From Raja brachyura (lineage: Eukaryota): a stretch of 64,000 nucleotides of DNA. Below the pieces are notes generated by a model. It was given only the letters and a program-made list of their open reading frames with translations, made no database searches and had not been told where the DNA came from. Each line of letters starts with the position of its first letter. Within the stretch, counting starts at the first letter, position 1. The position numbers were made by a program, and so were the translations under genes. Below, in pieces: positions 7,424-64,000 of the stretch. The stretch covers positions 19,716,001 through 19,780,000 of the forward strand of contig OY740806.1 in the NCBI GenBank assembly GCA_963514005.1, given 5' to 3'.

Positions 7424-8181
7424 TAGAAACATAGAACATAGAAAATAGGTACAGGAGTAGGCCATTCGGCCCTTCGAGCCTGCACCGCCATTCAATATGA
7501 TCATGGCTGATCAACCAACTCAGTATCCCGTACCTGCCTTCTCTCCATACCCTCTGATCCCCTTAGCCACAAGGGCCACATCTAACTCCCTCTTAATTAT
7601 AGCCAATGAACTGGCCTCAACTACCCTCTGTGGCAGAGAGTTCCAGAGACCCACCACTCTGTGTGTGAAAAAAGTCCTTCTCATCTCGGTCCTAAAGGAT
7701 TTCCCCCTTATCTTTAAGCTGTGACCCCTTGTCCTGGACCTCCCCAACATCGGGAACAATCTTCCTGCATCTAGCCTGTCCAACCCCTTAAGAATTTTGT
7801 AAGTTTCTATAAGATCCCCTCTCAATCTCTTAAATTCTAGAGAGTATAAACCGAGTCTATCCAGTCTTTCTTCATAAGGCAGTCCTGACATCCCAGGAAT
7901 CAGTCTGGTGAACCTTCTCTGCACTCCCTCTATGGCAATAATGTCCTTTCTCAGATTTGGAGAGCAGAACTGTACGCAATACTCCAGGTGTGGTCTCACC
8001 AAGACCCTATACAACTGAAGTAGAACCTCCCTGCTCCTATACTCAAATCGTTTGCTATGAAAGCTAACATACCATTGGCTTTCTTCACTGCCTGCTGCAC
8101 CTGCATGCCTACTTTCAATGACTGGTGTACCATGACACCCAGGTCGCGCTGCATCTCCCCTTTTCCTAATCGGCCACCATT
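7424..8181 (-). mobile_element. CR1 LINE 3' fragment nested in the Helitron
   Basis: ORF2 C-terminus [32 protein letters not shown], plus the CR1 3' tail. Confidence 0.92.
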
Positions 8182-8873
8182 GTTATCTTTATTTGCAATT
8201 TAATTCCTATTGAACAGATAATTCTTCCTTCTCTCCCCCTGCCCCTTCCCTCTCTCCCCCACCCCCTTCCCCCCCCCACTCTTCCACTTCTCTCTCCCTT
8301 CCCCCACCCCTCTCCCACCACACCTCTCTCCCTCCCTCTCCCTCTCTCTCCCCTCCCTCCGTATCTCCCCCACCCCTTTCCCCTACTCCTCTATCCCACT
8401 TCCAGCACCCCCTTCCCCCCTCTCTCTCTCCCACTTCCACCACTCTCCACTACACCTCACCCTCCCTCCCCATTTCCACTTCTCTTTCCCCATCTCCCTC
8501 CCCCATCCCTCTCTCCCCCTCCCTTTCCTCCCCCTCCCCACTCTTCCCCCTCTCTCCACTTTCCCCCTCCCTCCTCATTCTTCCCCCTCCTCATACCACT
8601 CTCCCCCTCCCTCCACACTCTTCTCTCTCTCTCTCTCTCCCCTACCCCTGTCCCTACCCCTCCCTCCACACTCTTCCCCCTCCCCTTCCCCTCCCACCCC
8701 TCTCTCAACCCCTCCCTGAACCCTCTCACCCCTTCCCCCACCCCCCTCTCCTCCTCCCTCTCCCCCTCTCCATTTCCCTCTCTCCTTACCGCTCCCACCC
8801 CCTCTCTCCCACCCCTCTTCATCCCCATCTCCCCCCCACCCCCTTCCCATCGCTCTTGCACCACTCCCTGCTA

Positions 8874-10005
8874 CCCCTCTTCCCCTTTCCCTCCCCCTCT
8901 TCCCCTTTCCCTCCCCCTCTTCCCCTCTCCCTCCCCCTCTTCCCCTCTCCCTCCCCCTCTTCCCCTCTCCCTCCCCCTCTTCCCCTCTCCCTCCCCCTCT
9001 ACCTCCCCCTCTTCCCCTCTCCCTCCCCCTCTTCCCCTCTCCCTCCCCCTCTTCCCCTCTCCCTCCCCCTCTTCCCCTCTCCCTCCCCCTCTTCCCCTCT
9101 CCCTCCCCCTCTTCCCCTCTCCCTCCCCCTCTTCCCCTCTCCCTCCCCCTCTTCCCCTCTCCCTCTCCCTCTTCCCCTCTCCCTCCCCCTCTTCCCCTCT
9201 CCCTCTTCCCCTCTCCCTCTCCCTCTTCCCCTCTCCCTCCCCCTCTTCCCCTCTCCCTCCCCCTCTTCCCCTCTCCCTCCCCCTCTTCCCCTCTCCCTCC
9301 CCCTCTTCCCCTCTCCCTCCCCCTCTTCCCCTCTCCCTCCCCCTCTTCCCCTCTCCCTCCCCCTCTTCCCCTCTCCCTCCCCCTCTTCCCCTCTCCCTCC
9401 CCCTCTTCCCCTCTCCCTCCCCCTCTTCCCCTCTCCCTCCCCCTCTTCCCCTCTCCCTCCCCCTCTTCCCCTCTCCCTCCCCCTCTTCCCCTCTCCCTCC
9501 CCCTCTTCCCCTCTCCCTCCCCCTCTTCCCCTCTCCCTCCCCCTCTTCCCCTCTCCCTCCCCCTCTTCCCCTCTCCCTCCCCCTCTTCCCCTCTCCCTCC
9601 CCCTCTTCCCCTCTCCCTCCCCCTCTTCCCCTCTCCCTCCCCCTCTTCCCCTCTCCCTCCCCCTCTTCCCCTCTCCCTCCCCCTCTTCCCCTCTCCCTCC
9701 CCCTCTTCCCCTCTCCCTCCCCCTCTTCCCCTCTCCCTCCCCCTCTTCCCCTCTCCCTCCCCCTCTTCCCCTCTCCCTCCCCCTCTTCCCCTCTCCCTCC
9801 CCCTCTTCCCCTCTCCCTCCCCCACTTCCCCTCTCCCTCCCCCACTTCCCCTCTCCCTCCCCCACTTCCCCTCTCCCTCCCCCTCTCCTTTCCCTCTCCC
9901 TCCCCCTCTCCTTTCCCTCTCCCTCCCCCTCTCCTTTCCCTCTCCCTCCCCCTCTCCTTTCCCTCTCCCTCCCCCTCTCCTTTCCCTCTCCCTCCCCCTC
10001 TCCCC
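8874..10005. repeat. 20-bp polypyrimidine minisatellite (CCCCTCTTCCCCTCTCCCTC)n within a C/T-rich tract spanning about 8220-11050
   Basis: Near-perfect 20-nt periodicity over more than 1 kb. Variant units occur at the right end. Confidence 0.95.
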
Positions 10006-11700
10006 TACCCCTCTTTCTCCTCCCCTCCTCTCCCCTCCACCTCCCTTTCCTCCCCTTTTCTCCATAACCCCTCTCCTCTCACCTTCCCCTCTCCTCTCCC
10101 CTTCCCCTTACCCCACCCCTCTCTAACCCCCTCACCCACCCTCAGGGACATGCTGCCCTGCCCCTCCCCCTACACATGTGACTAGGGGGACACTGCACCA
10201 CTATCCCCCACACATGTGACTGGGGGGAACATTGCTCGCTCGCGTTGCCTTTGAAACCTTTTCCAGAACATTCTTCCCCAACGGTAATTCGGACTTCGTT
10301 TCTCGACAGCGATCGATCTAAATTATTTTTCATTTTCAAAATCTTATTATTTGATTTAGTTCGACAGGAAAGTCAACTCTCCCTCCCCTTTCTCTCTCTC
10401 CCCTTCCACTCTCTCCCTCTCCTCTCTCTCCCCCTCCACTCTCTCTCCACCTCCCCTCCCCCTCTTCCTCCTCCTCTCCCCACCACCTGTCCATTTCCTC
10501 CCCTCTTCTCCACCACCCCTCTGCTCTCATCTCCCCCTCTTCCCCCCTCCCCTTCCCCCATCGCTCTCTACTCCCCTCACCCCCCTCCTCCTCCTCCCAC
10601 CCCCTTCCCTCTCTCCCCCACCCCCATCCTTCTCTCCACCTTCCCCTTCCCTCTCTCCCCCGCCCCCTTCCCCCCTACCCCTGTGCCTCTTCCACCACTC
10701 CCCCACCATCCTCCCCTCCCTCTCTTCAACTCCCACCACTCCCCTACCCCTCTCCCCCTCCCTCCCCACTCTTCCACCTCTCTCCCTTTCCCCACTCCTC
10801 TCCCACCCCACCTCTCTCCCTCACCCACCCTCTCTCTCCCCTCCTTCCCTATCTCCCCCATCCCTTTCCCCTACTACTCTCTCCCTCTTCCACCACTCCC
10901 CCTTCCCCCTCTCTCTCTCTCCCACTTCCGCCACTCTCCCCTATACCTCTCACCCTCCCTCCCCACTTCAACTTCTCTCTCCCCCATCCCTCACCTCTCC
11001 CCCTCCCTCCCCCACCCCTCTCTCCCCTCCTCCCTTCCCTCCCTCCCCCCTGCAACCACACGTTGGGGGAACAGACCCAACGGGTCTGCACTTGGTCTAG
11101 TTTATTTTAAACCTGTGACCTTTAATCCTTCACCACTTCTGACAGCCTTTGACATTTTATGCACTTTGATCAAATCTTCCCTCGTCTTTCTCTGTAGACG
11201 TTTCCAATTTATCCTCATAACTGTCAACTCCTCCCAGGAACATTCTCGTGAAACGTTTCTGGACCCTCACTAAAGCCCTCGCATCCTTCTGATAATGAAG
11301 TGACACTATTTTAAACACAGACTTTCAGTTGAGGCCAAGTCAGTGTCAAAATTAACATCTCTGCTTTTATAATCTCCTCATGGAACTCAGAATTATGAAT
11401 GCATTTACAGTTATAAACCAATCCCTTTACGTTCCGTGGCGACACAAGAGATTGCAGTTGCTGGAAATCTTGAGCAAATAAACAAAACTGCTGGAGGAAC
11501 TCAGCAGGTGATAAACATCCTGCTCAGGATCCTCCAAAGGTTTGTTTTGTTACTTTCACTTTCGATGACACATACACCCAGAGATCTTTATGATGTTAAA
11601 CTCTTATTGGAACGCAGGGCTGCCAACTCTCACGCATTGAGCATGAGACTCACGCATTTGATGAAATGCTCACGCTGATGTCAGAAGTTCTCACGCTCAA

Positions 11701-14112: not shown

Positions 14113-17100
14113 TTGTTTAATTTCTTTTATTAGAAGTAATCGATTTACAATATTGTAAACAGTTTTGCAAACATCAACTTAATTCTAAATTTTTTTTTAA
14201 ATAACCCATTGAAAGTTATTATCTTCTATTTTTTAGGAAAAAAAGATAGAGATAGAGTAGTTTTAAATCAATAAGAGAGTGATTAAATAATAATTTGATT
14301 ATATAAAAGAGAAAAAGAAAATAGAAAAAGAAAATAAGGTTACCAGAAAAATAAAAATATATTATATATATATATATAAATGAAAAACAACCAAATATGT
14401 TTTATCTAAAACTATTACAAATAATAGTATCAATGAAGACATGCTTATTAATCCTAGTATAAGAATATGTTATTCTCATCAAGTCCCGCAGGGTACCCGT
14501 CAAGCTGTGTTGTCAAGAGCAGCTACTTCTCTAGGTACTGTATATATGGAGACCATATTTGTTCGAAAGAATTATATTTGTCCAGTAGGACAAATCTGAT
14601 TCTTTCCAATTGTAACGTCTCCAACATTTCTGCCGCCCACATTTTAATTGTGGGGGTTAAAGTTCCCTTCCAAAATTTCAATATTAATTTTTTCCCTATT
14701 ATCAAACAGTAATCAAAGAAATTTCTTTGATTTACTGTAAGGACCGAGTTTGAATCCAAAATTCCAAGTATTATTATCTTTGGGTCTGGATCCAATCTAA
14801 TTTTAAGAACCTCAGAGATAACCTTAAACATTTCTGTCCAGTAATGATTCAATTTGGAACATGTAGCAAAACTGTGTGTTAAATTTGCTTCTAAATTCTT
14901 ACATTTATCACAAATTGCAGAGAGATTGGGAAAGATACTATTTAATTTAGTTTTTGAGTAATATAATCTATATAATACTTTAAATTGTATCAATGTATGT
15001 CTGGCATTTAACGAACACCGATGTATTTGCTGTAAACTTTCTTCCCAAATTTCTTTTGTTATGGATAACCCAATTTCTTTTTCCCATACTTGCCGATATG
15101 TTTCAGCTGTTCGTTTCTCCTTATCCAAAATTATGTTATATATATATGCTATTAATTTTTCTGTATTTGGATGTAAATTAAACACATCATCTAATAATCC
15201 TGGTACTTTATTTTTGTAATCTTGTGTGTTGGATTTTATATAATCTCTAATTTGTAAGTACCTAAACAAATGTTGCGGAGACAGTCCGTAAATCTCTAGT
15301 AACTCTTGAAATAAAAGAAATTTTCCTTTACTATAAAGGTATTCTATCCTTTTAATTCCTAAATCATCCCAATGTCTAAACCCTCCATCCAATATAGAGG
15401 GTCTAAATAATGGGTTTTTCGTTATTGGTAGTCTGAGTGAAAGATTATCTAATTGTAAAGTCTTAACTATTTGTTTCCAAATACGTCTATTATTATAAAT
15501 TATAGGGTTATCCCTATACATTTTTTTTTGTACATCCTTTGGAGCAAAGAGAATCGAGCCTACCTTATAAGGTAAACAATCTTCCTTTTCCATCTTTAAC
15601 CACATTGGTTCCTGATCCACATTTACCCACCAAAAATTCATATTCTTAATCTGAACTGCCCAAAAGTAGTATAAAAAATTTGGAAGTGCTAATCCTCCAT
15701 TTATCTTAGATTTACATAAATGTTTTTTACTTATTCTATGATTTTTATAATCCCAAATAAAACTATAAATAATATTATCTATTTTTTTTTTTTAAAGTCT
15801 TTGGGGAAAAAAAAAGGAATAGCCTGAAACAAATATAATAATTGTGGTAAAAACACCATCTTTATAGCATTTATTCTACCAATCATGGATATAGGAAGTG
15901 TTTTTCAATACAGAATATTTTTTTTAAGTTTATCTAATGATAGAGGGTAATTAGATTTAATTAGCGAATTATAAGATTTAGTTACATTAATTCCTAAATA
16001 TTTAAATTTGTCTTTAACTAATTTTAATGGATATTGTTGTAATATGTTTAAATTAATTCCTGTTATAGGCATAATATCACTTTTGTTCCAATTAATCCTA
16101 AATCCTGAAAACGTACCAAATTTAGTTATAACATTAAACAGCTTTGGTATACTAATTTCCGGTTTTGTAATATAAATCAACACGTCATCTGCATATAAAG
16201 ATATTTTGTTGGTTGTAGTGTCGGTATTATAGCCATAGATTTCAGGTTCAGATCTGATTCTTTCCGCCAAAGGCTCTATCATCAAAGCGAATAATAAAGG
16301 CGATAATGGACATCCCTGTCTACAACCCCTAAAGAGTTTAAATTTAGCTGATAACATTTGATTAGTTAAGATTCTTGCCGTTGGATTCAAATATAGAATT
16401 CTTATCCATTTACAGAATCTATCCCCCAATTGATACTTTTCCATTATATTAAATAAATATAACCATTCCACCTGATCGAATGCTTTTTCCGCATCTAGCG
16501 ATATAACTGCTAGTTCCCCATCCCGTACTTTTTTTGAATATATAATATTAAACAGGCGTCTAAGATTATGGGATGAATAGCGTTTTGGAATAAAACCTGT
16601 TTGATCACGATGTATTAATTTAGAAATCACTAAACTTAATCTCTGAGATAAAACTTTAGTTAATATTTTTTGGTCTGTATTCAGAAGTGCGATCGCTCTA
16701 TATGATCCTGGATCTTCCAAATCCTTATCTACCTTAGGTATGAGTGTAATTGTGGATTCGTTTAAAGAGTCTGGTAATTTGCCTTGTTCATATGCGTATC
16801 TATATACTGTATGTAGTCTTGGGGAAATCAAGTCTTGAAATTTTTTATAAAATTCGGCACTCAGGCCATCAGGGCCCGCTGCTTTTCCATTCTTTAACAA
16901 ACTAATTGCTTCTTCAATATCTTTTACTGTTATTTCAGCGTTTAACAAATGTCTACCTTCCTGATCTAGATTGTTAATTTGACACTCTTGTAAAAATGTA
17001 TCCATACCAACTGTTTGGCCTGTTACCTTAGATGAATAAAGATTTTGATAGTATTGTAAAAATCTGTCATTAATATCTTTTGGTATCGTCAATATATTTC

Positions 17101-18421
17101 CATCCGTAGATCTAATTCTATGTATCAATTTTTCATCTGATTTTCTAAGCTGTCGTGCTAACAGTTTTTGTGGTTTGTCTCCAAACTCAAAGTACACTTG
17201 CTTGGTTTGTTGAAATAGTTTAATGACTTGATTAGAATATATTTTATTAAGTCTATATTTAGCTATTGCAATTTTATTACTTAGCTCTTTAGAAGGGTGT
17301 TTTATGTTTTCACTGTCTAGTTGTTTTATCTCATTTTCTAACTTTTGTTCCAGCTTTCTATTTTCTTTATTAAAATGAGCCTGTGCTGATATTATTGCAC
17401 CACGCATATACGCTTTAAATGTGTCCCAAAGTAATGCTGATGAAACCTCAGGTTTGTCATTAGTTTCAAAAAATAATTTAATCTGTTCCATTACGTATTT
17501 ACAACAGTCTTTATCCTTTAATATCTGGGGATTAAATCTCCAAGTAGTCATTTTATTAAGTATATCTTTTAGTTTTATCTTGAATGTTAGTGGCGCATGA
17601 TCTGAAATAATAATATTATGATATTTTGCGTCATATGTAAAAGGTAATAATTTTGAATCTACTAAAAAATAATCTATCCTGGAGTAGGTTCCATATACAG
17701 GCGAAAAAAACGAGTATTCTCGTCCGGATGGATTATCTAGCCTCCAAATATCTTTAACATTAGATGTACTTATAAAAGAATTTATAAGTTTACTTGAATT
17801 AGAGGTAGCTTTCCTTTTTGTAGAAGACCTATCTAAGGTGCAGTTAAAATCACCCCCAATAATTAAATTATATTGAGTGGAAATAGGAATATTATTAAAT
17901 ATTTTCTTAAAAAATAATGGATTATCAAAATTAGGGGCGTATATATTCACCAAAATTACTTTCTGTGAATATAATTCCCCTGTAATTATTACATATCTAC
18001 CCTCTTTATCCTCTATTATAGAAGTTTGTTTAAAGGGTATACCTTTCCGAATAATTATTGCGACTCCTCGAGATTTGTGTATAAATGAAGAGTGATATAC
18101 CTTAGAAATCCATTTTGCTGTTAATCTATGTTGGGCATCTCTTTTAAGGTGCGTCTCTTGGAGGAAGATCACGTCTGATTTCAATCTGTTCAACAATGCT
18201 AGCATCTTTCCCCTTGTAATTGGTTCGTTAATTCCCTTAACATTCCAACTACAGAAGGTAATTCCACCCCCCACAGTCTTCACATTCATGTCTTGCATTT
18301 TACTGTTAGGGTGGTTTTTTTTGGAGTAGCCTTCTCGACCCCTCCAGCCTAGCGGTATACCCAAACGCCAACCCGATGAGAATTTCTATCCACAGTAATC
18401 CATATACATATCTTCTTAAAG
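14113..18421 (-). mobile_element. L1-clade LINE, 5'-truncated, near-complete but disrupted ORF2 (APE endonuclease, RT, Cys-rich C-terminus)
   Basis: SWNVKGIN, FLQETHL, GGDFN, YSRIDYF, SDHAP, SLDAEKAFD, GCRQGCPLSP, LYADD and CDKC..H...C. Stop at 15905 and shifts in A-runs. AATAAA and A-rich tail near 14115-14130. 8-bp TSD. Confidence 0.95.
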
Positions 18422-29102: not shown

Positions 29103-29165
29103 TAAGATGAAATATGGGTGTTTTCAAAATGCTGAATAATTTCTTTTTTTTTATTTTTTAAACAG

Positions 29166-29474
29166 GCATTAAGCATTTAAAAGTCACCCTGATATCCGGC
29201 AGACAGGGATCACTGAAGTGTCCCCATTCATTAAAGAACACAGATCAAAATTATATTTCGTACTGGAATAAAGAAGCTGAAACAATTTGCTATGTGAATT
29301 TCAACGGGAACGCTGATGTACAAGGGTGTACTGCATTGCAACTTCACGTAAAGGAAGGAGAAATTACCTTAACTATTACAGAAGTGAAACACTCAGATTT
29401 TGGGAACTACACTGGCTACTTGTACACAAAAGATGAACATTTTGAATGCAAAGTTAACTTGCTTGTAAGACATG
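29166..29474 (+). CDS. Ig gene A, V-type Ig domain exon (SIKHLKVTLISGRQGSLKCPH..YISYWNKE..ITLTITEVKHSDFGNYTGYLY..FECKVNLLVRH)
   Basis: Long poly-T tract plus AACAG acceptor and G|GTAGGT donor. The exon is 309 nt, open, phase 1-1. It has a B-strand Cys, C-strand Trp, LTI E-strand and DxGxY motif. Confidence 0.9.
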
Positions 29475-29744
29475 GTAGGTGTTTTAAAAATTGGTGTGGC
29501 TTTGAGGTACTTTCAAGTCAAATATTATGACAAAATCACTTCATAGCTTGGGATTTATTTATATGTGACAGTAAATCCATTGTATGTGTCATCTATGCAT
29601 TGGCTGGAGTATAGCTGGATTCCAGGACTGAAAAGTTTGTGCTGATGTTTCCTCAGAGTTGCAGACCAACTTGTTGCCGAGCCTCACTTGAGTAACATAG
29701 CATAAGCTAGAATGACTGTGATGTTTCTGCACTCTAAATACGTG

Positions 29745-45117: not shown

Positions 45118-46725
45118 CAGTGGCTTGCAAAAGTATTCATACCCCTTGAACTTTTCCACATTTTGTCACGTTACAACCACAAACGTAAATGTATTTTATT
45201 GGGATTTTATGTGATAGACCAACACAAAGTGGTGCATAATTGTGAAGTGGAAGGAAAATGATACATGGTTTTCACATTTTTTTACAAATAAAAAACTGAA
45301 AAGTGTGGCGTGCAAAAGTATTCAGCCCCCTTTACTCTGATACCCCTAAATAAAATAGAGTGCAACCAATTGCCTTCAGAAGTCACCTAATTAGTAAATA
45401 GAGTCCACTTGTGTGTAATCTAACCTCAGTATAAATACAGCTGTTCTGTGAAGATCTCAGAGGTTTGTTAGAGAACATTAGTGACCAAACAGCATCATGA
45501 GGCCCAAGAAACACGCCAGACAGGTGAGGGATAAAGTTGTGGAGAAGTTTAAAGCAGGGTTAGGTTATAAAAAAATATCCCAAGCTTTGAACATCTCACG
45601 GAGCACTGTTCAATCCATCATCCGAAAATGGAAAGAGTATGGCACAACTGCAAACCTACCAAGACATGGCCGTCCACCTAAACTGACAGGCCGGGCAAGG
45701 AGAGCATTGATCAGAGAAGCAGCCAAGATGCCCATGGTAACTCTGGAGGAGCTGCAGAGATCCACAGCTCGGGTGGGAGAATCTGTCCACAGGACAACTA
45801 TTAGTCATGTACTCAACAAATCGGGCCTTTATAATAGAGTGGCAAGAAGAAAGCCATTGTTGAAACAAAGCCATAAGAAGTCCCGTTTGCAGTTTGCCAC
45901 AAGCCATTTGGGGGACACAGCAAACATGTGGAGGAAGGTGCTCTGGTCTGATGAGACCAAAATTGAAGTTTTTGGCCTAAATGCAAGACGCTATGTGTGG
46001 TGGAAAACTAACACTGCACATCACCCTGAACACACCATCCCCACTGTAAAACATGGTGGTGGCAGCATCATGCTGTGGGGATGATTTTCTTCAGCAGGGA
46101 CAGGGAAGCTGGTCAGAGTTGATGGGAAGATGGATGGAGCCAAATACAGGGCAATCTTGGAAGATAACCTGTTAGAGTCTGCAAAAGACTTGAAACTGGG
46201 GCGGAGGTTCACCTTAGGACAACGACCCTAAACATACAGCCAGAACTACAATGGAATGGTTTAGATCAAAGCATTTTCATGTGTTAGAATGGCCCAGTCA
46301 AAGTCCAGACCTAAATCCAATTGAGAATCTCTGGCAAGGCTTGCAAATTGCTGTTCACAGATGCTCTCCATCCAATCTGACTGAGCTTGAGCTATTTTGC
46401 AAAGAAGAATGGGCAAAAATGTCAGTCTCTAGATGTGTAAAGCAGGTAGAGACATACCCCAAAAGACATGCAGCTGTAATTGCAGCGAAAGGTGGTTCTA
46501 CAAAGTATTGACTGGGGGGCTGAATACTTTTGCACACCACACTTTTCAGATTTTTATTTGTAATAAAGTTTGGAAATCATGTATAATTTTCCTTCCACTT
46601 CACAATTATGCACCACTTTGTGTTGGTCTATCATATAATCCCAATAAAATATATTTACGTTTGTGGTTGTAACGTGACAAAATGTGGAAAAGTTCAAGGG
46701 GTATGAATACTTTTGCAAGCCACTG
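45118..46725 (+). mobile_element. Full-length Tc1 (DD34E, IR/DR-type) DNA transposon, 1608 bp
   Basis: TA|CAGTGGCTTGCAAAAGTATTCATACCCCTTG...CAAGGGGTATGAATACTTTTGCAAGCCACTG|TA, with TIRs of about 210 bp containing internal direct repeats. Confidence 0.97.
45497..46511 (+). pseudogene. Tc1 transposase, inactivated by a nonsense codon at 46082-46084 and a small deletion near 46215
   Basis: Paired-like HTH, GRPPKL, WSDETK, KHGGGSIMLWG*, (Q)DNDPKH and [15 protein letters not shown]. Confidence 0.93.
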
Positions 46726-49280: not shown

Positions 49281-50448
49281 TTGGACCCTTGAAGACCGAA
49301 AAAGGTGAATTTATTATAGGGAACAAGGAAATGGCAGATGAGTTGAACAGGTACTTTGGATCTGTCTTCACTAAGGAGGACACAAACAATCTTCCTGATA
49401 TAGTAGTGGCCAGAGGATCTGGGGTGACAGAGGAACTGAAGGAAATCCGCATTAGGCAGGAAATGGTGTTGGATAGACTGATGGGACTGAAGGCTGGTAA
49501 ATCCCCAGGGCCTGATGGTCTGCATCCCAGGGTACATAAGGAAGTGGCTCTAGAAATTGTGGATGCATTGGTGATAATTTTCCAATGTACCATATACTCA
49601 GGATTAGTTCCTGTGGATTGGAGGGTAGCTAATGTTATCCCACTTTTTTAAAAAGGTGGAAGAGAGAAAACAGGCAATTATAGACCAGTTAGCCTGACAT
49701 CGGTGGTGGGGAAGATGCTGGTGTCAATTATAAAAGATGAGATAGCCGCTCATTTGGATAGCAGTAACAGGATCGGTCTGAGTCAGCATGGGTTTACGAA
49801 GGGGACAACATGCTTGACTAATCTTCTGGAATTTTTTGAAGATGTAACTAGGAAAATGGACAAGGGAGAGCCAGTGCATTTAGTATACCTGGACTTTCAG
49901 AAAGCATTTGATAAGGTCCCACATAGGAGATTAGTGGGCAAAATTAGGGCACATGGTATTGGGGGTAGAGTGCTGGCATGGATAAAGAAGTGGTTGGCAG
50001 ATTGGAAACAAAGAGTAGGGATTAACGGGTCCCTTTCAGAATGGCAGGCAGTGACTAGTGGGGTACCGCAAGGCTCAGTGTTGGGACTGCAGCTATTTAC
50101 AATATACATCAATGATTTGGATGAAGGGATTCAAAGTAACATTAGCAAATTTGCAGATGACACAAAGCTGGGTGGCAGTGTGAACTATGAGGAGGATGCT
50201 ATGAGAATGCAGGGTGACTTGGACAGGTTGGGGGAGTGAGCAGATGCATGGTAGATGAAGTTTAATCCAGATAAATGTGATGTTATCCAATTTGATAGCA
50301 AAAACAGGAAGGCAGATTACTATCTACATGGGGTCAAGTTGGGAAAAGGGGAAGTACAACGGGATCTGGGGGCCCTTGTACATCAGTCTGTGAAAGTAAG
50401 CATGCAGGTGCAGCAGGCAGTGAACAAAGCGAATGGCATGTTGGCCTT
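49281..50448 (+). mobile_element. CR1 LINE ORF2 RT fragment, followed by an inverted CR1 tail (about 50455-50535)
   Basis: [39 protein letters not shown] and KFADDTKL, with stops. Confidence 0.93.
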
Positions 50449-53475: not shown

Positions 53476-53575
53476 TCAGAATTCAGAAGTAATTATGTTG
53501 TCTTTTTGGCTATTGACATTTTCTGGAGAGTCACTTTTGGCCAATCTGCTTTGGTTCCTGTGCTGCTTTGAGTTC
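53476..53575 (-). CDS. Ig gene B, terminal exon (RNSKQHRNQSRLAKSDSPENVNSQKDNIITSEF*)
   Basis: Strong acceptor ctatttttctttctcattag. Phase-2 entry is open to TGA at 53478-53476. AATAAA signals lie downstream (52932-52927 and 52822-52817). Confidence 0.7.
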
Positions 53576-54659
53576 CTAATGAGAAAGAAAAATAGCAAAG
53601 TTGTGAGGAATAAGTTTCCAAATTATTTTGTGATGCTCAATTAAGAACCACCCAGGAATAATAATCCAGAGTGATTATTCTCAGCTTCTTCCTCAAACAC
53701 ACAACCAAATCTGTCACTCCACCCAATCCATTTACTTTTTTACTAAAATGCCTTGGGTTATTTTACCAATTTGAACATCAGTACAAGCAAATTCTACTCA
53801 ATAGAGTTTAATGAATTTTCAACTATAAAGAATGGCAAAGGCATGCCCGTATTCTATGATTTATCTTCTGAAACTACTTTCAAGTAATTCCTCAGGATCA
53901 ATTTTGGACACCCTTTTTTCCACACTGTGAAGATATCCAGTTAACCTCAATTTTATCATTCTATTTACCTGTTATGCACTTCTGGCCATGTTACTCCCAG
54001 TTTACCTCCAGTTTTCTCAGCATAGCCCAGATATGTATATCAATGAAACATCGGAAGTTAAATGCAATTACAAAATGCTTTATTTGCAAGGGAATCTGAG
54101 TACAAAGATAGACACATTTGGTTCCAATTGCATACGAGTCTAGTTGGACTGCATCTGAAATATTATGTACTGGTCTGGTTTCCTAATCCAAGAAATGAAT
54201 TTACATGATGAAGAGAGAGTAGATTCCTGGAATGGTGGCATTGTCATGGGGGGACATTAGGCAGACTGGGCCTATACCAATTATATTATATGTGGTAAAT
54301 TGTGATTGCATTGAGGCATTACAAGTTATTATCATGGGAAAGTGAGGATGATGTTTCCCCAGACGAGCATGTTCGGAATCACAATAAGGAGGTCACCATT
54401 CTGGACAGGAAGGAGAACAAGGTCCTTCACCTTGAGGATAGAGGTCTTTGGAATTCTTACCTGGGTGGAGGCTTAGTCAGTTGAGAGAGAGATGGGGAGA
54501 TTTTTTGGATAATAAGGGATATGAAGGAAAGTTGTATTGAGATAAAAGATCAAGTCAATGATCTTATTGAAGTGTTGAACAGGTGCAAGGGACCAATGGC
54601 CTGCATGTGTTCTTGTGTGATGTGCAGCTTGAATGTGAATATTTGCAACTTTTGGTACA

Positions 54660-55680
54660 TTTTCTTTTTTGTAATATTTTTTTATTAAAGATAATCAATT
54701 ACGATACCTTAAACAAGTTTACAGATATCAGATAATTCATTTTATCATACATGTAAAACATTAATAATACTTATCTATTATTTTTTTAGAAATAAAGATA
54801 AAGAAAAAGTAGCTTATAAATCAATGAGGGTATAGTTAACTAATAATTTGATAATTGTAAAAAAGAAAAGAAGAGAAAAGAACTAAAATTTTTTTTAAAA
54901 AAACAACAAAAAAAAACAAAAAATTTTAACCTCTGCCTATATTATATATATAAATAAAAGATCACAATATGTATTATTAATAACTCTACTACAAATGATG
55001 GTATCAGTAAAGACATGTTACTTCCATTTTAAAAATACATTATTCTCATCAGATCCCGCGGGGGGCACGTCGAGCCATGTTGCCAAGAACAGCTACTTAT
55101 CTAGATACAATATATATGGAGACCACATCTGTTCAAAAAAATTATACCTGTCCAATAGGACAAATCTAATTCTTTCCAGATGTAGCGTCTCCATCATCTC
55201 TGCTGCCCACATTTTAGTTGTGGGGGATAGTGTTCCCTTCCAAAATTTCAATATAATTTTTTTCCCAATTATCAAACAGTAATCAAAGAAATTTCTTTAA
55301 TTTACTGTAAGTGATAACTGTAAGTCCGGAATTCCAAATATTATTGACTTTGGGTTGGGGTCCAATTTAACTTTTATAACTTCAGAAATAACTTAAAAAA
55401 TTTCTGTCCAATAATGATTCAATTTAGGACATGTGACAAAACTATGTATTAAATTTGCCTCTGTTTTCTTACATTTGTCACAGATAGCAGAAAGCTTCGG
55501 AAAGATACTATTTAATTTAACTTTTGAATAATGTAACCTATATAATACTTTAAATTGAATCAATATATGTCTGGCGTTTAATGAACATCGGTGTATACGT
55601 TGTAAACTTTCTTCCCAGTTTTCTTTTGTTATAGCTAATTCTATGTCATTTTCCCATGTCCTTTTGGTACATTTTCTGTC
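54660..55680 (-). mobile_element. L1-clade LINE 3' fragment (same family as 14113-18421)
   Basis: WEESLQRIHRCSLNARHILIQFKVLYRL..CDKC..KFWKGTLSPT matches the larger L1. Confidence 0.92.
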
Positions 55681-56079
55681 CATCATCAAGACCATAAAAT
55701 AATTACTCGCTATCTGCACCTGCCGCTGCTGAACTTAGCCCGTGATCTGACAAATCTCTCACCTGAATCTTTTTTTACTTTCAGATGGGGCTGTTGCAAA
55801 GCTCTCTGTCCAGCCCCATGGGCTTCTCTCACCTGTGGTTCAGCCACACCATGGTGTTAAGCAGTTGGTCTTACTCTAAACCTTATTCCCTGTATTGTGT
55901 ATCTATACACTGTGGATGGCGTGATAGTAATCATGTATTGTCTTTCTGCTCACTAGTTAGCTTTTCACTGTACCCTGAGTCTGAGTTTCAAAATTCCTCA
56001 AATCCTTGCTCCTTGCTGTTGCAAACTTGCTTACTACTTAATGCATATTATTGGAGAAAAAATGTTCATCATTTATATA

Positions 56080-56368
56080 TCTTAAGGATAAGGGGGAAAT
56101 CCTTTAGGACCGAGATGAGAAGGACTTTTTTCACACAGAGAGTGGTGGGTCTCTGGAACTCGCTGCCACAGAGGGTAGTTGAGGCCAGTTCATTGGCTAT
56201 ATTTAAGAGGGAGTTAGATGTGGTCCTTGTGGCTAAAGGGATCAGAGGGTATGGAGAGAAAGCAGGTACAGGATACCGAGTTGGATGATCAGCCATGATC
56301 ATATTGAATGGCGGTGCAGGCTCGAAAGGCCGATTGGCCTACTCCTGCACCTAATTTCTATGTTTCTA
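56080..56368 (+). mobile_element. CR1 LINE 3' end
   Basis: RTEMRRTFFTQRVVGLWNSLP plus tail. Confidence 0.9.
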
Positions 56369-56402
56369 TATAAAAAGGATAAAAGGCTATTTTAAGGCTT
56401 AC

Positions 56403-56427
56403 CTCCATTTGCACAAGCAGTCCCGAT
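56403..56427 (-). CDS. Ig gene B, small cytoplasmic exon (DRDCLCKW)
   Basis: ccttttt attgtatag acceptor and GAG|GTAAGC donor. 25 nt, phase 1 to 2, matching both neighbours. Confidence 0.7.
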
Positions 56428-56548
56428 CTATACAATAAAAAGGACACATTATTAGGGAAATTCTCCCATACGTATCATTTTTTTCATCTGCAATCTGATT
56501 GTCATAATATAGAAAATTTGTTTTTATTTAATTGCTTTGACACATTTG

Positions 56549-58443
56549 ACACAGGCAAACGGCCTGGTGGGGAGGTTCCACCGGCAACTCAAGGCAGCGC
56601 TGAAGGCAAGACTCTCAGCCCGGACTGGATGGAAGCACTGCCGTGGGTCTTGCTGGGCATCCGAACTGCGCCGAAGGAGGTCATGGGCTCAAGTTCAGCG
56701 GAGCTCGTTTATGGGTCGCCGCTCACGGTGTCCAGGGAGTTTGTGTCGTCGGCGTCGGGGCAGCAGGGACTGCTCATTCATCCTACAGTGCCTTCGCGAG
56801 CAAGTCGGCAGGCACCCGCTAGCGCCGACAACCCGCCATGGGACATTCCGCCCGCACGTGCCAACCACCTTCCGGAACTGCCCCGGTTTTCCTGCGCCGT
56901 GTCGCCAACCGGACGCTGCTCCAGAGGCCGTATGTAGGTATGTTACAAATCTTACGTTGACCCGCGCTGCAGTTCTGCCGCTCCCCGTGTGCGCGACATT
57001 AGCAGCTTTCAGAGGGGGGCGGGCTTAAAGTGCCGTTTTTCCACAGGCAGGGAAAATCGATCATGTCGGGCGTTTTTGTTGCGGAAGAAAAATCGTTCCG
57101 ACATTTCACGAATGAAGGTATTTTTAAATTACGCTAAATTATTTATTAACTAGAGTAATTTAAAAATCACCTTCAAAAGCCGTGAGCACCGACAACCGGA
57201 AAGATTTTGCGTAGGGGAGAAAAACAGGTAAATTGTTTATTTTTATATTAAAAGTTGGTTTTTTTGGGAGGCTTTAATAATATTTTCATGTTGCGAAATG
57301 TGGTCCAAAAAAATGTATGAACAAACAGTATTTTTCCTCCCGACTTCACAGCAAACCGCAACGTTCTAATCCACCGCATTCCGCTAAAACCCACTCGCGT
57401 TGATTTAAATGGCCATTAATTTACAGGCATAAAACACTAAATTCCTTCCATTTGGCCCAGAAATTCATGAAAATTAGATTTTAAAATTATGTTATATTGT
57501 GGATTATTGTGTGAATGTTATTTGGACACTTAGGCAATTTAAAAAAAGTTTATATTTTCTTAAGAAATGGATAGATGTTTAGATCTACTCATTGAATTTT
57601 GTAATTAGCTACAATTAGATAACTAACTAATTATATGTTTTAATTTCAGGTCATCCAAGTAAGATTTTTTCATATTTGTTTCAGAATGCTTCAATCTATA
57701 ATAACTGAAAATTCCATTGAGTTCTCTTAATTTTTAAGAAAGTTATGAGCTTTTAACTGTTCCAGATCACAGCTTTTGAGTTAAGTCAATTGAAAGGCAA
57801 TGGGGAACAAGATGCTAATTTCCGAGTATGAAAATGGCCATAACTTTCTTAATACTGAAGATATGAAAGTGAATTAGGTGTCAAATTAAACTTCTTTTTA
57901 TGCTTTATCTGATGGGATAAATTGCAGACTTGATTTTTTAAATCTCAAAATTTTGTAATATTGCTACAGTAAGAGGGCCCGTTCCGATTGCTGGAGCACA
58001 GACAGACGACCTTTGTGTTGGACATGGGGGGGACGGCTGGAGGCCGTGTCGATTGACCGGTTAAAGCCGGCACACTTGGACATTGACCAGCCGGTGCTGG
58101 TTGCCCAGCTCATCTGTGAGGTCGCCCCTCTTCGCAGCTCCCTCCTCCTGTCCCTCCATCTGTGCCTCCACCGGCCCCTCTGTCGGCCGATTTCCGTACG
58201 CGGTCCGGTCGTGTTGTACGCCCACCGGTACATTTCGTGCCTCCTGTTCTGGGGGGGGGGGGAGCTGTGACGGGTCTCAAGGGTCGGGCTATTCCTCTAT
58301 CGAACCCCTCGGCATGAGAATGAACTAGTCCGGGGGCGGCCCTTAGCTACAGGGATAAAGGGCAGGGGTTTATGCGCGATTGTTCTCTTGCAGACCCGAC
58401 TCTCTGATTATTGCATGTTGCCACACTCTATTCAACTGTAACA
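56549..58443 (+). mobile_element. Gypsy integrase C-terminus, polypurine tract and 3' LTR (58266-58443), split by a DNA transposon
   Basis: QANGLVGRFHRQLKAAL, LPWVLLGIRTAPKE, SSAELVYG, QRPY/EGPF and VSIDRLKPAHLD. G-run PPT, then TGTGAC...GTAACA. Confidence 0.85.
56933..57968. mobile_element. Non-autonomous DNA transposon with imperfect TIRs of about 18 bp
   Basis: TGTAGGTATGTTACAAA ... TTTGTAATATTGCTACA. It interrupts the Gypsy PY|EGP codons. Confidence 0.7.
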
Positions 58444-58550
58444 ATGGAGCTGACCATCGTAGGAATACTTTATTCCATAGGTATCGTAGCTTGAATTATT
58501 CTGTCATTCCAAATTCTTTCACTTAAATAAATAAATAAATACGTGGGGAA

Positions 58551-58741
58551 TGCAGTTGCTGATTTAAATCGAAGGTAGACACAAAATGCTGGAGCAACTC
58601 AGCGGGACAGGCAGCATCTCTGGAGACATAAAATGCTGATGAACAGTCTGAAGAAGGGTCTCGACCCCAAATGTCACCCATTCGTTCCCTCCAGAGATGC
58701 TGCCTGTACCGCCGAGTTACTCCAGCATTTTGTGTCTACCT
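58551..58741. repeat. Penelope-derived inverted-repeat element (arms of about 50 bp, 58576-58626 and 58690-58738)
   Basis: tagacacaaaatgctggag..cagcatctctggag is inverted as ctccagagatgctgcc..ctccagcattttgtgtcta, with a degenerate hammerhead-like core between the arms. Confidence 0.75.
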
Positions 58742-58807
58742 AAGTGGTGAATGTTAATAGCTATTAAAACTTCTGCTTCACATTTGTTTGTTTACCAGTT
58801 AATTTAC

Positions 58808-58885
58808 CTTTCCTGCAGCAGAGCAGTAACAAAATCAGAGTCGTCATGAAGATTGGCACCGTTACAAATCGGACAGGGAAATGAC
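58808..58885 (-). CDS. Ig gene B, transmembrane exon (SHFPVRFVTVPIFMTTLILLLLCCRK)
   Basis: tttgttgtcttacag acceptor and AAG|GTAAAT donor. 78 nt, phase 1-1. Hydrophobic helix followed by CC and a basic stop-transfer. Confidence 0.85.
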
Positions 58886-59289
58886 CTGTAAGACAACAAA
58901 AATATGGGTTTCTTATGGTTTGGATCAGTATAAAAATACGCTGGCAAATATCATTTAAATTGCCTTCCTTGTGTATCGATTCAGGGCAGTATTAATATCA
59001 TGAATTGCAAATTCATTTCTCATGCCATTATTTGTGAGATAGGATTGTACCAGGCCATCTAGGTTTAGATTTCTTATTGCCATGTTCACCGAGGTCCAGT
59101 GAAGAGCGTTGTTTTGGATGACATCGAAACAGATCACATTAATACAATCACATCAAACTCAAGCACAATAAATAAAGCAAGGGAGAAGATGCACAGTGCA
59201 GAATATAGTTCTCAGCATTCAGTTTCATAGACAAAGCCCATGATAGTAAGTTTGCAGATGATATCAAGATTGCTGGGGTCACGGACTGT

Positions 59290-59940
59290 GAAGAAGGATG
59301 CCAAAGTTTACATTATTTTGGCTGCTTTTCTGAGGCAGAGTGGAGTGTAGATGGAATCAATAGTGGGAAGTCTGGTCTGTATGATGGTCTGGGCTACATC
59401 TACTATTCTCTGCCATTTCTTGCGGTCTTGGGCAGAACTGCTCCCAAACCAAGCTGTGTTGCAACCCAACAGTGGGCATTCTATGGTGCTTTTGTGGAAG
59501 TTTGTAAGAGTCATTGAATAATATTATATTATAAGAGTCATTGAACTAATAATATTAAAGGCAAGAAAATTGAAGATTTCAACCATTTTCCGCTTCATTG
59601 TTGGTGATTTGGGCATGTTTTGCACCACACTTTCAGACATTGATAACTAGCTCAATTATCTTGTAAATATTGAGGGAGAGGTTATTGTCAATATGTATAG
59701 ACTTCTGTCCATATTTTCCTAACCTCATTTTACTAAGTGCTCTATCTCCTTCCTGTCTTGTCATTGTTCATGATCCAGCCCACCACATTGGAGCATCTGC
59801 AAATTGGTGGATGGACTTTTAACCAACTTTGGCCATACAGTCGTTAGTGCATCGGGAGTACAGTAAGGGACTGAGAAAGCATCCTTGCAGGACACTGATA
59901 TTGACAATTATTGTGGAGGAGGTGTTGTTAGATTGTAGTC
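59290..59940 (-). mobile_element. Rex1/Babar-like LINE fragments
   Basis: LTNFHKSTIECPLLGCNTAWFGSSSAQDRKKWQRIV resembles the Rex1 ORF C-terminus. Confidence 0.65.
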
Positions 59941-60863
59941 TAGGCATCAGAAAATCAAGACTCATTGATAGAATCCAAATGTTATTGATTTACTGCAATC
60001 CATTCAAATTGCAGTTAAGACTCGTATACTTGTTGTATAATGTTGGCATAATGTGAGAGGGGGAAAGTTTATTGGATAAGTGAGGGGTAAGTTTTTTTTG
60101 CACAATCTGGTGGTGGTGGGGGACTGGAACACACTGCCAGGGCTTGTGGTGGAGGCAGCTACGATAGTGGTGTTTAAGAGGCTTTTGGATAGGCACATGG
60201 ATATGCAGGGGATGGAGGGATATGGATCTTGTACAGGCAGATGAGATCAGTTTAACTTGGCATCGTGTTTGGCACAGACATTGTGATATACTCTTCTATT
60301 TTAATAGCTGACATATCTGACCACCTTAGAATATTAATATAAAAATACCATTAATTGTGTTCTCACTAACACGTTAGGCAAGAAATGTTAATTTGTGATT
60401 CCAATGTTCGATTGTTCTCATTGACGGTAATTCATTCCTTCCACAATGTACTTGCCCTCTGAAATGCGGATGGTTATATAGATGAATGCAATTCAGGCTG
60501 CTTCATGTATGATTCACATAGGCAAAATCTGGCAACTGAGCCTTCCTATCAACAACTAGAGAGCCGTCCTAAGCTATTATCTACCTCATTGGAGACCCTT
60601 GGACTATTTTTCATTGGACTTTACTGAACTTTATCTTGCACAAAACGTATTCACACTATTCCCTTTATCATGCATCTATCTGTACAGTGTGGATGGCTCG
60701 ATTGTAAACATGTATTGTCGTTCTGCTGACTGGAATATAGTGTAGAATATCATTGATTGGCAGGAGCCACAGTTGTTACAGGAGCCTGTTTTTGCACATC
60801 ACCCCTCTATAAATTAACAAATTAGAAAAATATTGTTTCTTTGGCCGATATAACAGTACTTAC

Positions 60864-61184
60864 TTTTCCAATCTGATGTCACGTATACTCTCACAGAAGA
60901 TTCTTTGGTGCCATATGAATTGTAAGCTCTGCAGATATACTTTCCATTGAAGGAATCATCGATCTTCTCTTTCTGCAGAATTGAATGACTTAATCCAATA
61001 GACAATTGTATCCTTTCAGTTTGGTCTCCTGATTTCATCCAGATGACCGTGGATATTGGATTACTGTCCGTGGTACAATTTAGTTGAAGATATGACTGAG
61101 GTTCAACATAGATGAATTCTTGGAGCAGAGGCTGCAATTGATGCGCAATAGAATTCCTGTAATGTATTGCTGGCTGTGGACCAT
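60864..61184 (-). CDS. Ig gene B, I/C2-set Ig domain exon (YGPQPAI..LQLNCTTDSNPISTVIWMK..DSFNGKYICRAYNSYGTKESSVRVYVTSDWK)
   Basis: 321 nt, phase 1-1, A|GTAAGT donor. Pyrimidine tract with a GAG acceptor gives a YGP junction. Contains C..SNP....W and GxYxCxAxNxxG motifs. Confidence 0.88.
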
Positions 61185-62319
61185 CTCAATCAGAACAGTG
61201 GAAAAAAAAGGCATAAGTCACAAGGGCAGCTTCAACAAAGCTTTGAAAGTACCACCTGTCACCCCTTTGTATTTGCGCCTCATTTTTAACCTGTTATTTA
61301 AAATAGATTTTGTATATTTGAAATAACATTTCGCTTAACAATGCTGAATGTTTTATAAAATTGTGGAGGTTATTTGTCCAATTACTCCAGTGTTGACATA
61401 AAGGAGGAGTCCAGATTTTGCCCATACATTCCTCCATCACAAGAGTGAGGCCACGTACTAAGTGAAAGAATCTAATGTTCTGCTTGGGTAGTTTACACCC
61501 CAATGGCATGACATTGAATTCTTCAATTCACAGTTATACTTTTCCTACATTCCTTTGGCCTAATGGGTGGCTTCAGAACCAACAAGGGCCATGAGAAGTG
61601 AATGCAAATCAGACTGGCCATTAATCCAAGAGTTGCCATGACAGTTCAAGATTTGATGGTTTGTTTGGATCAGTGGTGGTGAGGAAGGCTGCAAGCTTAA
61701 TAGTTGACTGATAAGAAGTGCAATTATATACAGTACTGTGCGCATTTGTGACATTTGAACATCCCTGTTAGATTTTAGCAATGTGCAGGTTAATTTTTGG
61801 CCAATAATGTTTCTCAATTTTCCTTCTCAAAACCCTTCATCAATCATGAGAAGTACTCATTAAGAGGCAGATTAGGCTTTGTCCAATGGAGTGTACTGGA
61901 CATGATTATCTCAATTTGGTCTCCACTACATGCTGTGGTCGTTTTGATGAGCACCTGCACTCAGTGGTCTAGTAGTGATCCCCAGCTTCCTAGTATTTCC
62001 CACTTTAATTCCCAATTCTACGTCTATTCTGACCTGTGCATCAGTGGCCTGCTCCACTCCCAGTAGTGACGCCTGACATAAACTAGAACAACATCTTATC
62101 ATCTGTTGAGGTACTTTTGCAATTTTCTGGAATGAATATTACGTTTTCCAACTTCACATACTGCTCTCCTATTGTGTTCTTATGTTCCTTTCTCAAACAG
62201 CTTATTTGAACAGTCATGCTCCTTAATATCTGATCTTTCTTAAATTATCTCCATTGTCTTGCCCCTCATTCCTCCCTCCAGCTCTGCTTTGAAAACTGCC
62301 AACCCTGCACTCCAGTAGA

Positions 62320-62630
62320 GTTACTGCAGCAGTAGAGTTGCTGCCTTACAATGGCAAAGATCCAGGTTCGATCCTGACGTAGGGTGCTCTACACTGAATT
62401 TGTACGTCCTGCCCATGACCTGCGTGGGTTTTCTCCGAGATCTTCAGTTTCCTCCCACACTCCAAAGATGTACAGATTTGTGGGTAGGCTTGGTATAAAT
62501 GTAAATTGTATAAATGTAAACTGTCCCTAATGTGTGTAGAATAGCGTTAATGTGTGGGGATAGTTGGTAGGCACAGACTCGGTGGGTCGAAGGGCCTGTT
62601 TCCATGCTGTATTTCTAAACAAAACTAAAC
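62320..62630 (+). mobile_element. V-SINE (HE1-like)
   Basis: B-box GGTTCGATCC, V-core and aaactaaac tail. Confidence 0.8.
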
Positions 62631-63498
62631 TCTCTCCAGCCTCTCCATTTCTAAGAAAGGGTCAATGAATCAAATTATTGTTTCTCTTTCATCTGGACTG
62701 GGTGAGTTCTTCCAACATTTTGGTTCATGTTTCAACATCTGTAGATTTATGTATTAACTTCCTTAACTTTCTTCATTCAACTTAGTAAAATTCCATCTTC
62801 TTCAATCTTTCTGCAAGAACTGCTTTCCTAAATCACTCTAATTATTCAAACAAATGTTTTTTCTCTCCTCTAGACTTGCTAAAATGGATAGCTAGAAATG
62901 TCTACCATGTTCCAGCTAACTCAACAATTGAGATTGAGAAAAGCATTGTTGAAATTTGTTACCAGTTAGAAGTATTTTCTATGTGGTCCGTGGACTATAA
63001 ATCTTCACAGGAATCAATAGGAGAGACAACATGCCTCATTGGGTGATGTTCTATCCCATTGTCACCAGCCATGCTGGTTCGGTACATTTACAACATTGCG
63101 TAGCTATCAGCATGGATTACTCACCAGGCAGGTCAAAAAGTCAATTAATTACAAACTGTTAACTCTCAATCCTCAGCAATGTCCATGAATAGCAATGTTG
63201 GCATTGTTATCCTGTGGAACTTGCTCACTTGTAGCCTACACCCTAGTGCTTAGTTTGGATTTTGAGAGAACCACTTCACTTCACACCACATCCTGGCCAA
63301 ATTGTCTAAGACTACGAGATCCAGAAGACCTTCACCACAGTCAATTAAGCTGCATTTCAGACTGAAAAATCAAGGTGAGAAGCATTTCTGACATTACCTG
63401 GTTATTTAAAAGGCTAGGTGAAATACTTAGAACTTAGCCCATGTCCATGGTACGTAATTGGAAATTGTAATGAAAGAGCACAAAATGAACATACTTAC

Positions 63499-63825
63499 AA
63501 TTAACGTTGAGTGTTATGTGTTGCATTATCCACTCTTTGCTTGTTGCATGAAGGACCTGACAAGTAAAAACTGTCCTGTGGTCTTGCAAAGTGGGAGTAA
63601 AACTAATTTGACTTGTTGCGTCAAATGTGCCATCAGAGTTCCTGGTTGGGGAGAGTTTTGTGGTAATATTAACATCTGATTTTGTAGCTTGAGTGTCGTG
63701 AGGATGTTGCCATTGCATTGTGATGTTCTCAGGATAAAATCCCCATGCATGGCAGTCCAAAACAGATGCTTTCTCTGCTATTAAATCTCCCTGAGTCATT
63801 AGAATTTTTGGTGTAGATTCTGGGA
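63499..63825 (-). CDS. Ig gene B, C1-set Ig domain exon (PESTPKI..LDCHAWGFYPENITMQW..RNSDGTFDATSQISFTPTLQDHRTVFTCQVLH..ITLNVN)
   Basis: tgttatttgttacag acceptor and T|GTAAGT donor. 327 nt, phase 1-1. Carries the C1 signatures CxAxGFYP..W, NxDGTF and FxCxVxH. Upstream exons lie beyond the window. Confidence 0.92.
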
Positions 63826-64000
63826 CTGTAACAAATAACATGAAACAAAGTTATATGTTGCGCTACATACTTACATACTTATCCTTTCGTGCTAAATTAA
63901 AAACAAAAACAAAGCATGTTAATTAGCATTTATCCACTTAATGTATATAGGTCTGAAGAATGGTCTTGACCTGAAACATCACCCATTCCTTCTCTCCAGA

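Follow-up and report, generated by a model that had tools for sequence, protein, structure and literature searches.

What kind of receptor is encoded by an immunoglobulin superfamily (IgSF) gene in which an antibody-type C1 domain is followed by an I-set domain, then by a transmembrane (TM) segment and a tyrosine-free tail, and is such a gene peculiar to one genome? The gene in question lies on the minus strand, between positions 63825 and 53476, of a 64,000-nucleotide (nt) stretch of the skate Raja brachyura (contig OY740806.1, positions 19,716,001 to 19,780,000), hereafter the window. A preliminary description, made from the letters of the window, had read five phase-consistent exons here and had proposed an undescribed chondrichthyan immune receptor that mixes SIRP/B7-H6-like and nectin/CADM-like layouts. 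We found that the window holds the intact 3′ five exons of a batoid (skate/ray) gene. Its product is a type I membrane glycoprotein in which a C1-set and an I-set domain are followed by one TM segment and a 45-residue tail. We are highly confident that the gene truly belongs to a VJ-C1-Iset family conserved in elasmobranchs.

In the window sequence, five open, exon-like segments stand where the preliminary description had placed them; their splice sites are canonical and their phases match. Together with a putative 3′ untranslated region (UTR), they are as follows:

63825-63499, minus strand: C1-set exon, with acceptor ...ttgttacag behind a good pyrimidine tract, donor gtaagt, phase 1/1

61184-60861, minus strand: I-set exon, with the weaker acceptor ...ctgattgag, donor gtaagt, phase 1/1

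58885-58808, minus strand: TM exon, phase 1/1

56427-56403, minus strand: cytoplasmic micro-exon of 25 nt, with acceptor ttattgtatag, donor gtaagc, entered in phase 1 and left in phase 2

53575-53476, minus strand: last coding exon (32 residues), phase 2, with the stop codon TGA at 53478-53476

53475-52817, minus strand: putative 3′ UTR, delimited by motif positions only; a motif scan gave AATAAA signals 543, 586 and 653 nt past the stop codon

All four exon joins, that of the micro-exon included, have good indirect support, because annotated spliced proteins of other elasmobranchs align in the same exon order. The searches were made with single exons or with natural homologue proteins. When four homologues were compared with the window by tblastn, the same exons were matched, each once and in colinear order, and no V exon was found within the 64 kb. 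The four exon peptides that were searched align to the homologues without gaps at the junctions (alignment A1). The C1 and I-set exons meet as ...L-N-V-N then Y-G-P..., the codon split over this junction giving Y and the next two giving G-P; the I-set and TM exons meet as ...S-D-W-K-S then ...P-V-R...; and the peptide of the last exon falls on N-S-K-Q...T-S-E-F of the homologues. The micro-exon peptide is too short for searching and was placed via a family motif, D-R...C-x-C. Of the 139 AG..GT candidates in the 5.2-kb intron that are open and compatible in phase, only 56427-56403 shows this motif.

Two other gene models were rejected. In a four-exon model, the TM exon would be spliced straight to the last exon in another frame, giving a 27-residue tail that ends in K-K-T-T, but both the micro-exon segment and the T-S-E-F frame are found in the homologues. 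Joining C1 to I-set in phase 0 was discarded on the same grounds, as the homologues have N-Y-G-P at that point.

The preliminary description had called the first domain a true C1, and this proved correct, because Pfam, sequence matches in the Protein Data Bank (PDB) and the AlphaFold/Foldseek comparison all give C1. The exon scores 49 bits against the Pfam C1-set profile (PF07654; cut-off 21) and 23 bits against the CD80-like C2-set_2 profile, a margin of 26 bits. Its peptide contains W-G-F-Y-P, N-S-D-G-T-F and C-Q-V-x-H motifs and two N-I-T sequons, and residues 24 and 88 are the canonical cysteines. Among the best 60 PDB sequence matches, all are C1 domains (UrIg2, immunoglobulin (Ig) constant domains, B7-H6, major histocompatibility complex (MHC) proteins and SIRPgamma). 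An AlphaFold model of the exon, built from 31 aligned sequences, reached a predicted local distance difference test (pLDDT) score of 87, and the best 50 Foldseek matches to this model are all classical C1 domains, namely MHC class I alpha3, MHC class II alpha2/beta2, Ig CL/CH1 and beta2-microglobulin.

The second Ig exon likewise bears out the earlier reading of an I-set domain that starts with Y-G-P. It scores 32.4 bits against Pfam I-set (PF07679; cut-off 23.7) and 33.1 bits against Ig_3 (cut-off 30) and gave no match to the C1-set profile in Pfam. Canonical cysteines stand at residues 36 and 84, there is one N-C-T sequon, and the exon ends in the membrane-proximal S-D-W-K. Its best 60 PDB matches include the I-set domains of titin, DSCAM, Robo and contactins, together with MAG. 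If the donor of this exon is read through (60861-60817, minus strand), a stop follows after 16 codons. The epaulette shark homologue introduced below (P0100) ends soon after the I-set domain in a similar, read-through-like tail without a TM segment, and this end may represent a soluble or secreted isoform made by intron retention.

Downstream of the Ig domains, the TM exon encodes an arginine, a hydrophobic run of 18 residues and then C-C-R-K; the arginine is the second position of the best 19-residue hydropathy window (2.23). The micro-exon encodes D-R-D-C-L-C-K-W-(R), a juxtamembrane motif with two cysteines, and the peptide of the last exon lacks tyrosine and ends in T-S-E-F. The tail past the hydrophobic run (C-C-R-K, micro-exon and last exon) therefore comes to 45 residues, slightly more than the 43 or so first estimated, and is free of tyrosine in R. 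brachyura, as had been noted.

As the 5′ part of the gene lies outside the window, the layout of the full protein was read from a sawshark homologue (P0037), which adds an N-terminal V-set domain by Pfam. This domain best matches Ig lambda V domains, through a J-like G-P-G-T-R-L-H-V (a motif of the kind G-x-G-T-x-L), so that a germline-joined V with a J-like motif stands directly before the C1 domain. With the whole sawshark protein as query, the top PDB match was SIRPalpha, at 58.6 bits across V and the first part of C1, and the next matches were Ig light chains across V and C, SIRPgamma in sixth place, UrIg2, B7-H6 and MAG. Its structural neighbours in the Atlas are clusters with three domains (V/C2-set_2/I-set), among them CADM1-like, CADM3-like, nectin-3 and siglec clusters, with TM-scores of about 0.5-0.65. 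An AlphaFold model of the whole sawshark protein, made from a nine-row alignment, was poor (pLDDT 46). With this germline-joined V domain of VJ type from sawshark, the family layout is read as VJ-type V, C1, I-set, TM and tail. Judged from sequence, a non-rearranging, antigen-receptor/SIRP-like VJ-C1 head appears to be set on an extra Ig domain of the adhesion-molecule type. In sequence, the head is like antigen receptors or SIRPs, while the plan of the protein as a whole is closer to nectin-like adhesion molecules, in agreement with the mixed layout that had been suggested from the window.

To place the gene among its relatives, the C1 exon was searched against 1.84 billion representative proteins. 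Besides hundreds of generic C1 matches, the search returned a 93%-identical genomic fragment from another species (P0001), which runs into both flanking introns, and three proteins that match in one stretch (P0007, P0037 and P0100). The named homologues, with percent identity for the three of that search, are the following:

P0007, Hemitrygon akajei (stingray), 68%, automatic name synaptogenesis protein syg-2-like

P0037, Pristiophorus japonicus (sawshark), 56%, automatic name sialoadhesin-like

P0100, Hemiscyllium ocellatum (epaulette shark), 44%, automatic name sialic acid-binding Ig-like lectin 10

P0151, Chiloscyllium plagiosum (carpet shark), automatic name sialic acid-binding Ig-like lectin 10

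P0156, Scyliorhinus torazame (catshark), automatic name siglec 11

Orthologues can thus be assigned: they are present, as automatically named models, in at least five other elasmobranchs. The skate gene is therefore a member of a conserved family and not a one-off. The earlier statement that no orthologue could be assigned holds in so far as we found no described one. The automatic names contradict each other, as expected of an uncurated family, and are misleading. Residues 1-57 of the stingray model P0007 resemble reverse-transcriptase debris (tblastn match to 49889-50026 of the window) in place of the V domain. Because such debris stands where the V domain should be, this model is probably mis-predicted at its 5′ end.

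Scores for single domains set the family apart. Within it, the C1 domain scores 65-218 bits and the I-set exon 80-136 bits; among the proteins compared, the best C1 score outside the family is 57 bits, and the I-set exon is matched by no outsider. A maximum-likelihood tree built from 64 C1 domains gives the family as one clade (support 99/96), with a split inside it between a batoid side (the window, P0001 and the stingray) and the sharks. The clade joins a polytomy with other C1 groups, among which SIRPs have long branches. When the full sawshark protein and the stingray protein were used for word searches, nothing outside elasmobranchs came closer than SIRPalpha/beta, at 25-28% identity. The query of the protein-set search was the C1 exon only, and a bony-vertebrate relative that keeps just the I-set, TM and tail parts would escape it. 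The family was seen in sharks and rays only, with no chimaera among the matches, so that the label chondrichthyan was too wide for the evidence. We found neither a described one-to-one orthologue nor, in the literature, any paper describing a V-C1-Iset gene, which is in keeping with the suggestion that the gene is undescribed; the literature result is weak evidence, as most subscription journals lie outside the coverage.

Considering that SIRPs match best in sequence, both among the structures that have been solved and among named proteins, the family might be an elasmobranch orthologue or co-orthologue of the SIRP family in which an I-set domain took the place of the membrane-proximal C1 and the tail with its immunoreceptor tyrosine-based inhibitory motif (ITIM) was lost. 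SIRPalpha and SIRPgamma rank first and sixth in the PDB search with the sawshark homologue, and SIRPalpha/SIRPbeta are the first non-elasmobranch matches of the word searches. The two also have a plan in common: a VJ-type V that does not rearrange, a true C1 behind it, three Ig domains in all and one TM segment, with a basic TM residue for adaptor pairing in SIRPbeta and an arginine at the TM edge in the VJ-C1-Iset family. However, the SIRP ectodomain is V-C1-C1, whereas the third domain of the VJ-C1-Iset family is an I-set domain. This family also has no ITIM, which separates it from the alpha type, and its conserved tail of 45 residues, ending in a motif of the PDZ-ligand type, differs from the very short tail of the beta type. 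In the tree, its C1 domains fall in the polytomy and not in one group with those of SIRPs, which gives no support either way for a sister relation, and the identity is low. Moreover, mammalian SIRPs do not have the best C1 scores outside the family; these belong to V-C1-C1 models of reptiles, whose automatic names are mixed (NCR3LG1-like, SIRPbeta1). Orthology with SIRP is an unlikely, if the strongest, alternative to a separate VJ-C1-Iset family.

B7-H6 (NCR3LG1), which is found among the PDB matches, and the tetrapod V-C1-C1 models of NCR3LG1-like and SIRPbeta-like type have the nearest C1 domains outside the family. They differ from it in V domains that look B7-type by eye, in the lack of an I-set domain and in another tail, and they form a separate, well-supported clade in the C1 tree. 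The clade of the shark 'titin-like' multi-C1 protein is likewise separate from the VJ-C1-Iset family.

Alternatively, the gene could be a divergent member of the nectins and nectin-like molecules (CADM, CRTAM, PVR) whose C1-like second domain either remained or turned into a canonical C1 and which serves mainly cell-cell adhesion via PDZ scaffolds. The plan of V, C(1-like), I/C2, TM and a short tail with a PDZ-binding end is the same, and the CADM1-like, CADM3-like and nectin-3 clusters named above are Atlas neighbours of the sawshark protein, although their TM-scores (0.56-0.65) reflect the common architecture of three Ig domains. Nectin ectodomain structures have been solved, yet in none of three PDB searches (with the C1 exon, the I-set exon and the complete sawshark protein) do the best 60 matches include a chain from a nectin, a CADM or PVR; these matches show no specific sequence relation, and weaker ones may exist below them. 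The sawshark V is Ig-lambda/SIRP-like with a J motif, and the Pfam margin given above favours C1-set over C2-set_2, in line with a canonical C1. Nectins have an afadin-binding C-terminal motif and CADMs a class II PDZ / 4.1-binding one, and the C-terminus of the VJ-C1-Iset family matches neither; the TM arginine is a further difference. Membership of the nectins and nectin-like molecules is therefore doubtful, and less probable than orthology with SIRP.

An equally doubtful idea is that the family is a surviving intermediate, in which an antigen-receptor-type VJ-C1 head is carried on the I-set stalk, TM segment and PDZ-anchored tail of a nectin/JAM-like adhesion molecule. If true, it would document how VJ-C1 receptors (SIRP, Ig/T-cell receptor (TCR) precursors) grew out of adhesion molecules.

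The UrIg, UrIg2 and PRARP genes also have a germline-joined VJ exon and a C1, and UrIg occurs in elasmobranchs. PRARP of the chicken, reportedly described by Fu et al. in 2019, is said to have the layout VJ-C1-TM. We rejected membership of the UrIg/UrIg2 group: UrIg2 is among the PDB matches, but with 16-19 bits per domain only, and apart from their VJ domain the UrIg proteins are built solely of C1-type domains, of which there are many. In UrIg2 these number up to 9-11, and an I-set domain is lacking (PMC12227049). The skate gene nevertheless appears to fit the broader kind of non-rearranging VJ-C1 IgSF receptor (PMC10751288, PMC12227049), to which it adds an I-set domain and a PDZ-type tail, and it is accordingly described here as a candidate undescribed variant of that kind, with its function inferred. 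Non-rearranging VJ-C1 genes of the UrIg/PRARP type have been discussed as relics of antigen-receptor precursors, and those of cartilaginous fish are the main material for reconstructing antigen receptors as they were before the RAG transposon (PMC12227049, PMC10751288). The present layout, for which no earlier description was found, places a true C1 between a VJ domain and an I-set domain.

Several features of the TM segment and tail are conserved in the family. The arginine at the TM edge is kept in all five sequences that reach the TM segment, inside a R-x-V-x-V-P-I-F stretch (A1). Two cysteines, as C-x-C or C-x-x-C, stand on the micro-exon segment in the window and in all four homologues with tails: D-R-D-C-L-C-K-W-R of the window corresponds to D-R-C-F-L-C-N-R-R in stingray and to D-R-Y-G-P-C-N-C-R in sawshark. 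The five C-termini read T-S-E-F, T-S-E-F, I-T-E-F, T-S-K-L and T-S-E-L, all conforming to [S/T]-x-[F/L], which is a class I PDZ-ligand pattern. Tyrosine occurs in the tails of three homologues, and its absence from the skate tail is thus no trait of the family. Because these tyrosines are not aligned or lie outside the context of an ITIM or an immunoreceptor tyrosine-based activation motif (ITAM), no tyrosine-based signalling motif is conserved in the family.

The conservation of these motifs suggests that the protein is most likely a ligand-binding surface receptor with two outputs, an adaptor with an acidic TM residue and PDZ anchoring. The V domain, encoded beyond the window, would bind the ligand at the tip of a stalk of three domains. 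The conserved arginine at the outer TM edge would let the receptor pair with an adaptor chain of the FcRgamma/DAP12/CD3zeta type, whose TM segment holds an acidic residue, as in SIRPbeta and other activating IgSF receptors. The conserved C-terminal [S/T]-x-[F/L] would anchor the tail to a PDZ scaffold in the manner of CRTAM, JAMs and nectin-like molecules, and the two juxtamembrane cysteines may be palmitoylated or form a metal clasp. Because no tyrosine motif is conserved, the tail itself would not signal via ITIM or ITAM. In detail, this adaptor-plus-PDZ mechanism is tentative; we hold family membership and mechanism, taken together, with moderate confidence. The combination of a TM arginine with a PDZ-type tail would unite features of activating immune receptors and of junctional adhesion molecules. 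Expression restricted to leukocytes would make the gene a candidate for a new lineage of immune receptors; epithelial or neural expression would make it a new adhesion molecule with an antibody-type domain.

Several points weigh against this interpretation. The leader and V exon lie beyond the window (>64000), and intactness was read for the 3′ part only. The arginine may be a mere stop-transfer or interface residue, and the conserved tail of 45 residues exceeds that of typical adaptor-dependent activating receptors. The PDZ-ligand reading is based on five C-termini and a degenerate motif. In addition, the six sequencing runs that contain this DNA are genomic, and none is on record as RNA. Within the length ranges that they covered, word searches gave no annotated protein for the gene from this genome; the one made with the C1 exon matched a single genomic fragment, owing to its length window. 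The skate copy may be unannotated.

The last two observations would also be expected if this genome carries a silent or decaying, unexpressed copy of a family that is functional elsewhere, as would introns full of transposon debris. Against this stand the five open exons with their canonical splice sites, and the C1 exon is also kept open in a close relative at ~0.8% DNA divergence and in a third species (P0001; 93% protein identity). Because the relative is only ~0.8% diverged, a comparison of exon and intron conservation is uninformative. A silent copy is improbable, somewhat more so than the adhesion-molecule alternatives. Contigs of the four genomic runs X1-X4 run through the introns of the gene, and the thousands of apparent 'joints' in them are artefacts. 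They arise because the introns contain extremely high-copy repeats (58400-58800, 62400-62800 and 63800-64000), with a summed contig depth of 0.2-3 million in all four of these runs.

Finally, a protein of the siglec/sialoadhesin or SYG-2 type, as the automatic names of the homologues in NCBI and UniRef would have it, is very improbable, even though MAG (siglec-4) is among the PDB matches to the I-set region and siglec clusters are among the Atlas neighbours: the names conflict with each other, the MAG match is limited to generic I/C2 folds, SIRPalpha tops the whole-protein search, the homologue V best matches Ig lambda V with a J-like motif, and the second domain is a C1, which already contradicts a siglec, since siglecs are not known to have a C1-set domain and consist of an N-terminal, sialic-acid-binding V-set followed by C2-set domains only.

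Elsewhere in the window, the following elements were observed:

8170-11270 (approximate): CT-rich, strongly strand-skewed low-complexity repeat of ~3 kb, with GC content up to 0.645 and a GC skew of -0.94, which gives long Pro/Ser/Leu or Gly/Glu/Arg pseudo-open reading frames in all frames

14526-18385, minus strand: nearly full-length long interspersed nuclear element (LINE), with an open reading frame (ORF) of 826 residues for endonuclease and reverse transcriptase (RVT_1, 132 bits) and, just downstream of it, an ORF of 422 residues without a Pfam match

29162-29527, plus strand: open segment of 122 residues that resembles a V-set domain weakly (20 bits in Pfam, under the cut-off), on the opposite strand to the receptor gene and ~24 kb away from it

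45485-46508, plus strand: remnant of a Tc1/mariner (Sleeping Beauty-like) transposase whose parts lie in different frames (HTH_Tnp_Tc3_2, 84 bits; DDE_3, 37 bits)

55096-55734: copy of the C-terminal part of the 422-residue LINE ORF, inside an intron of the receptor gene

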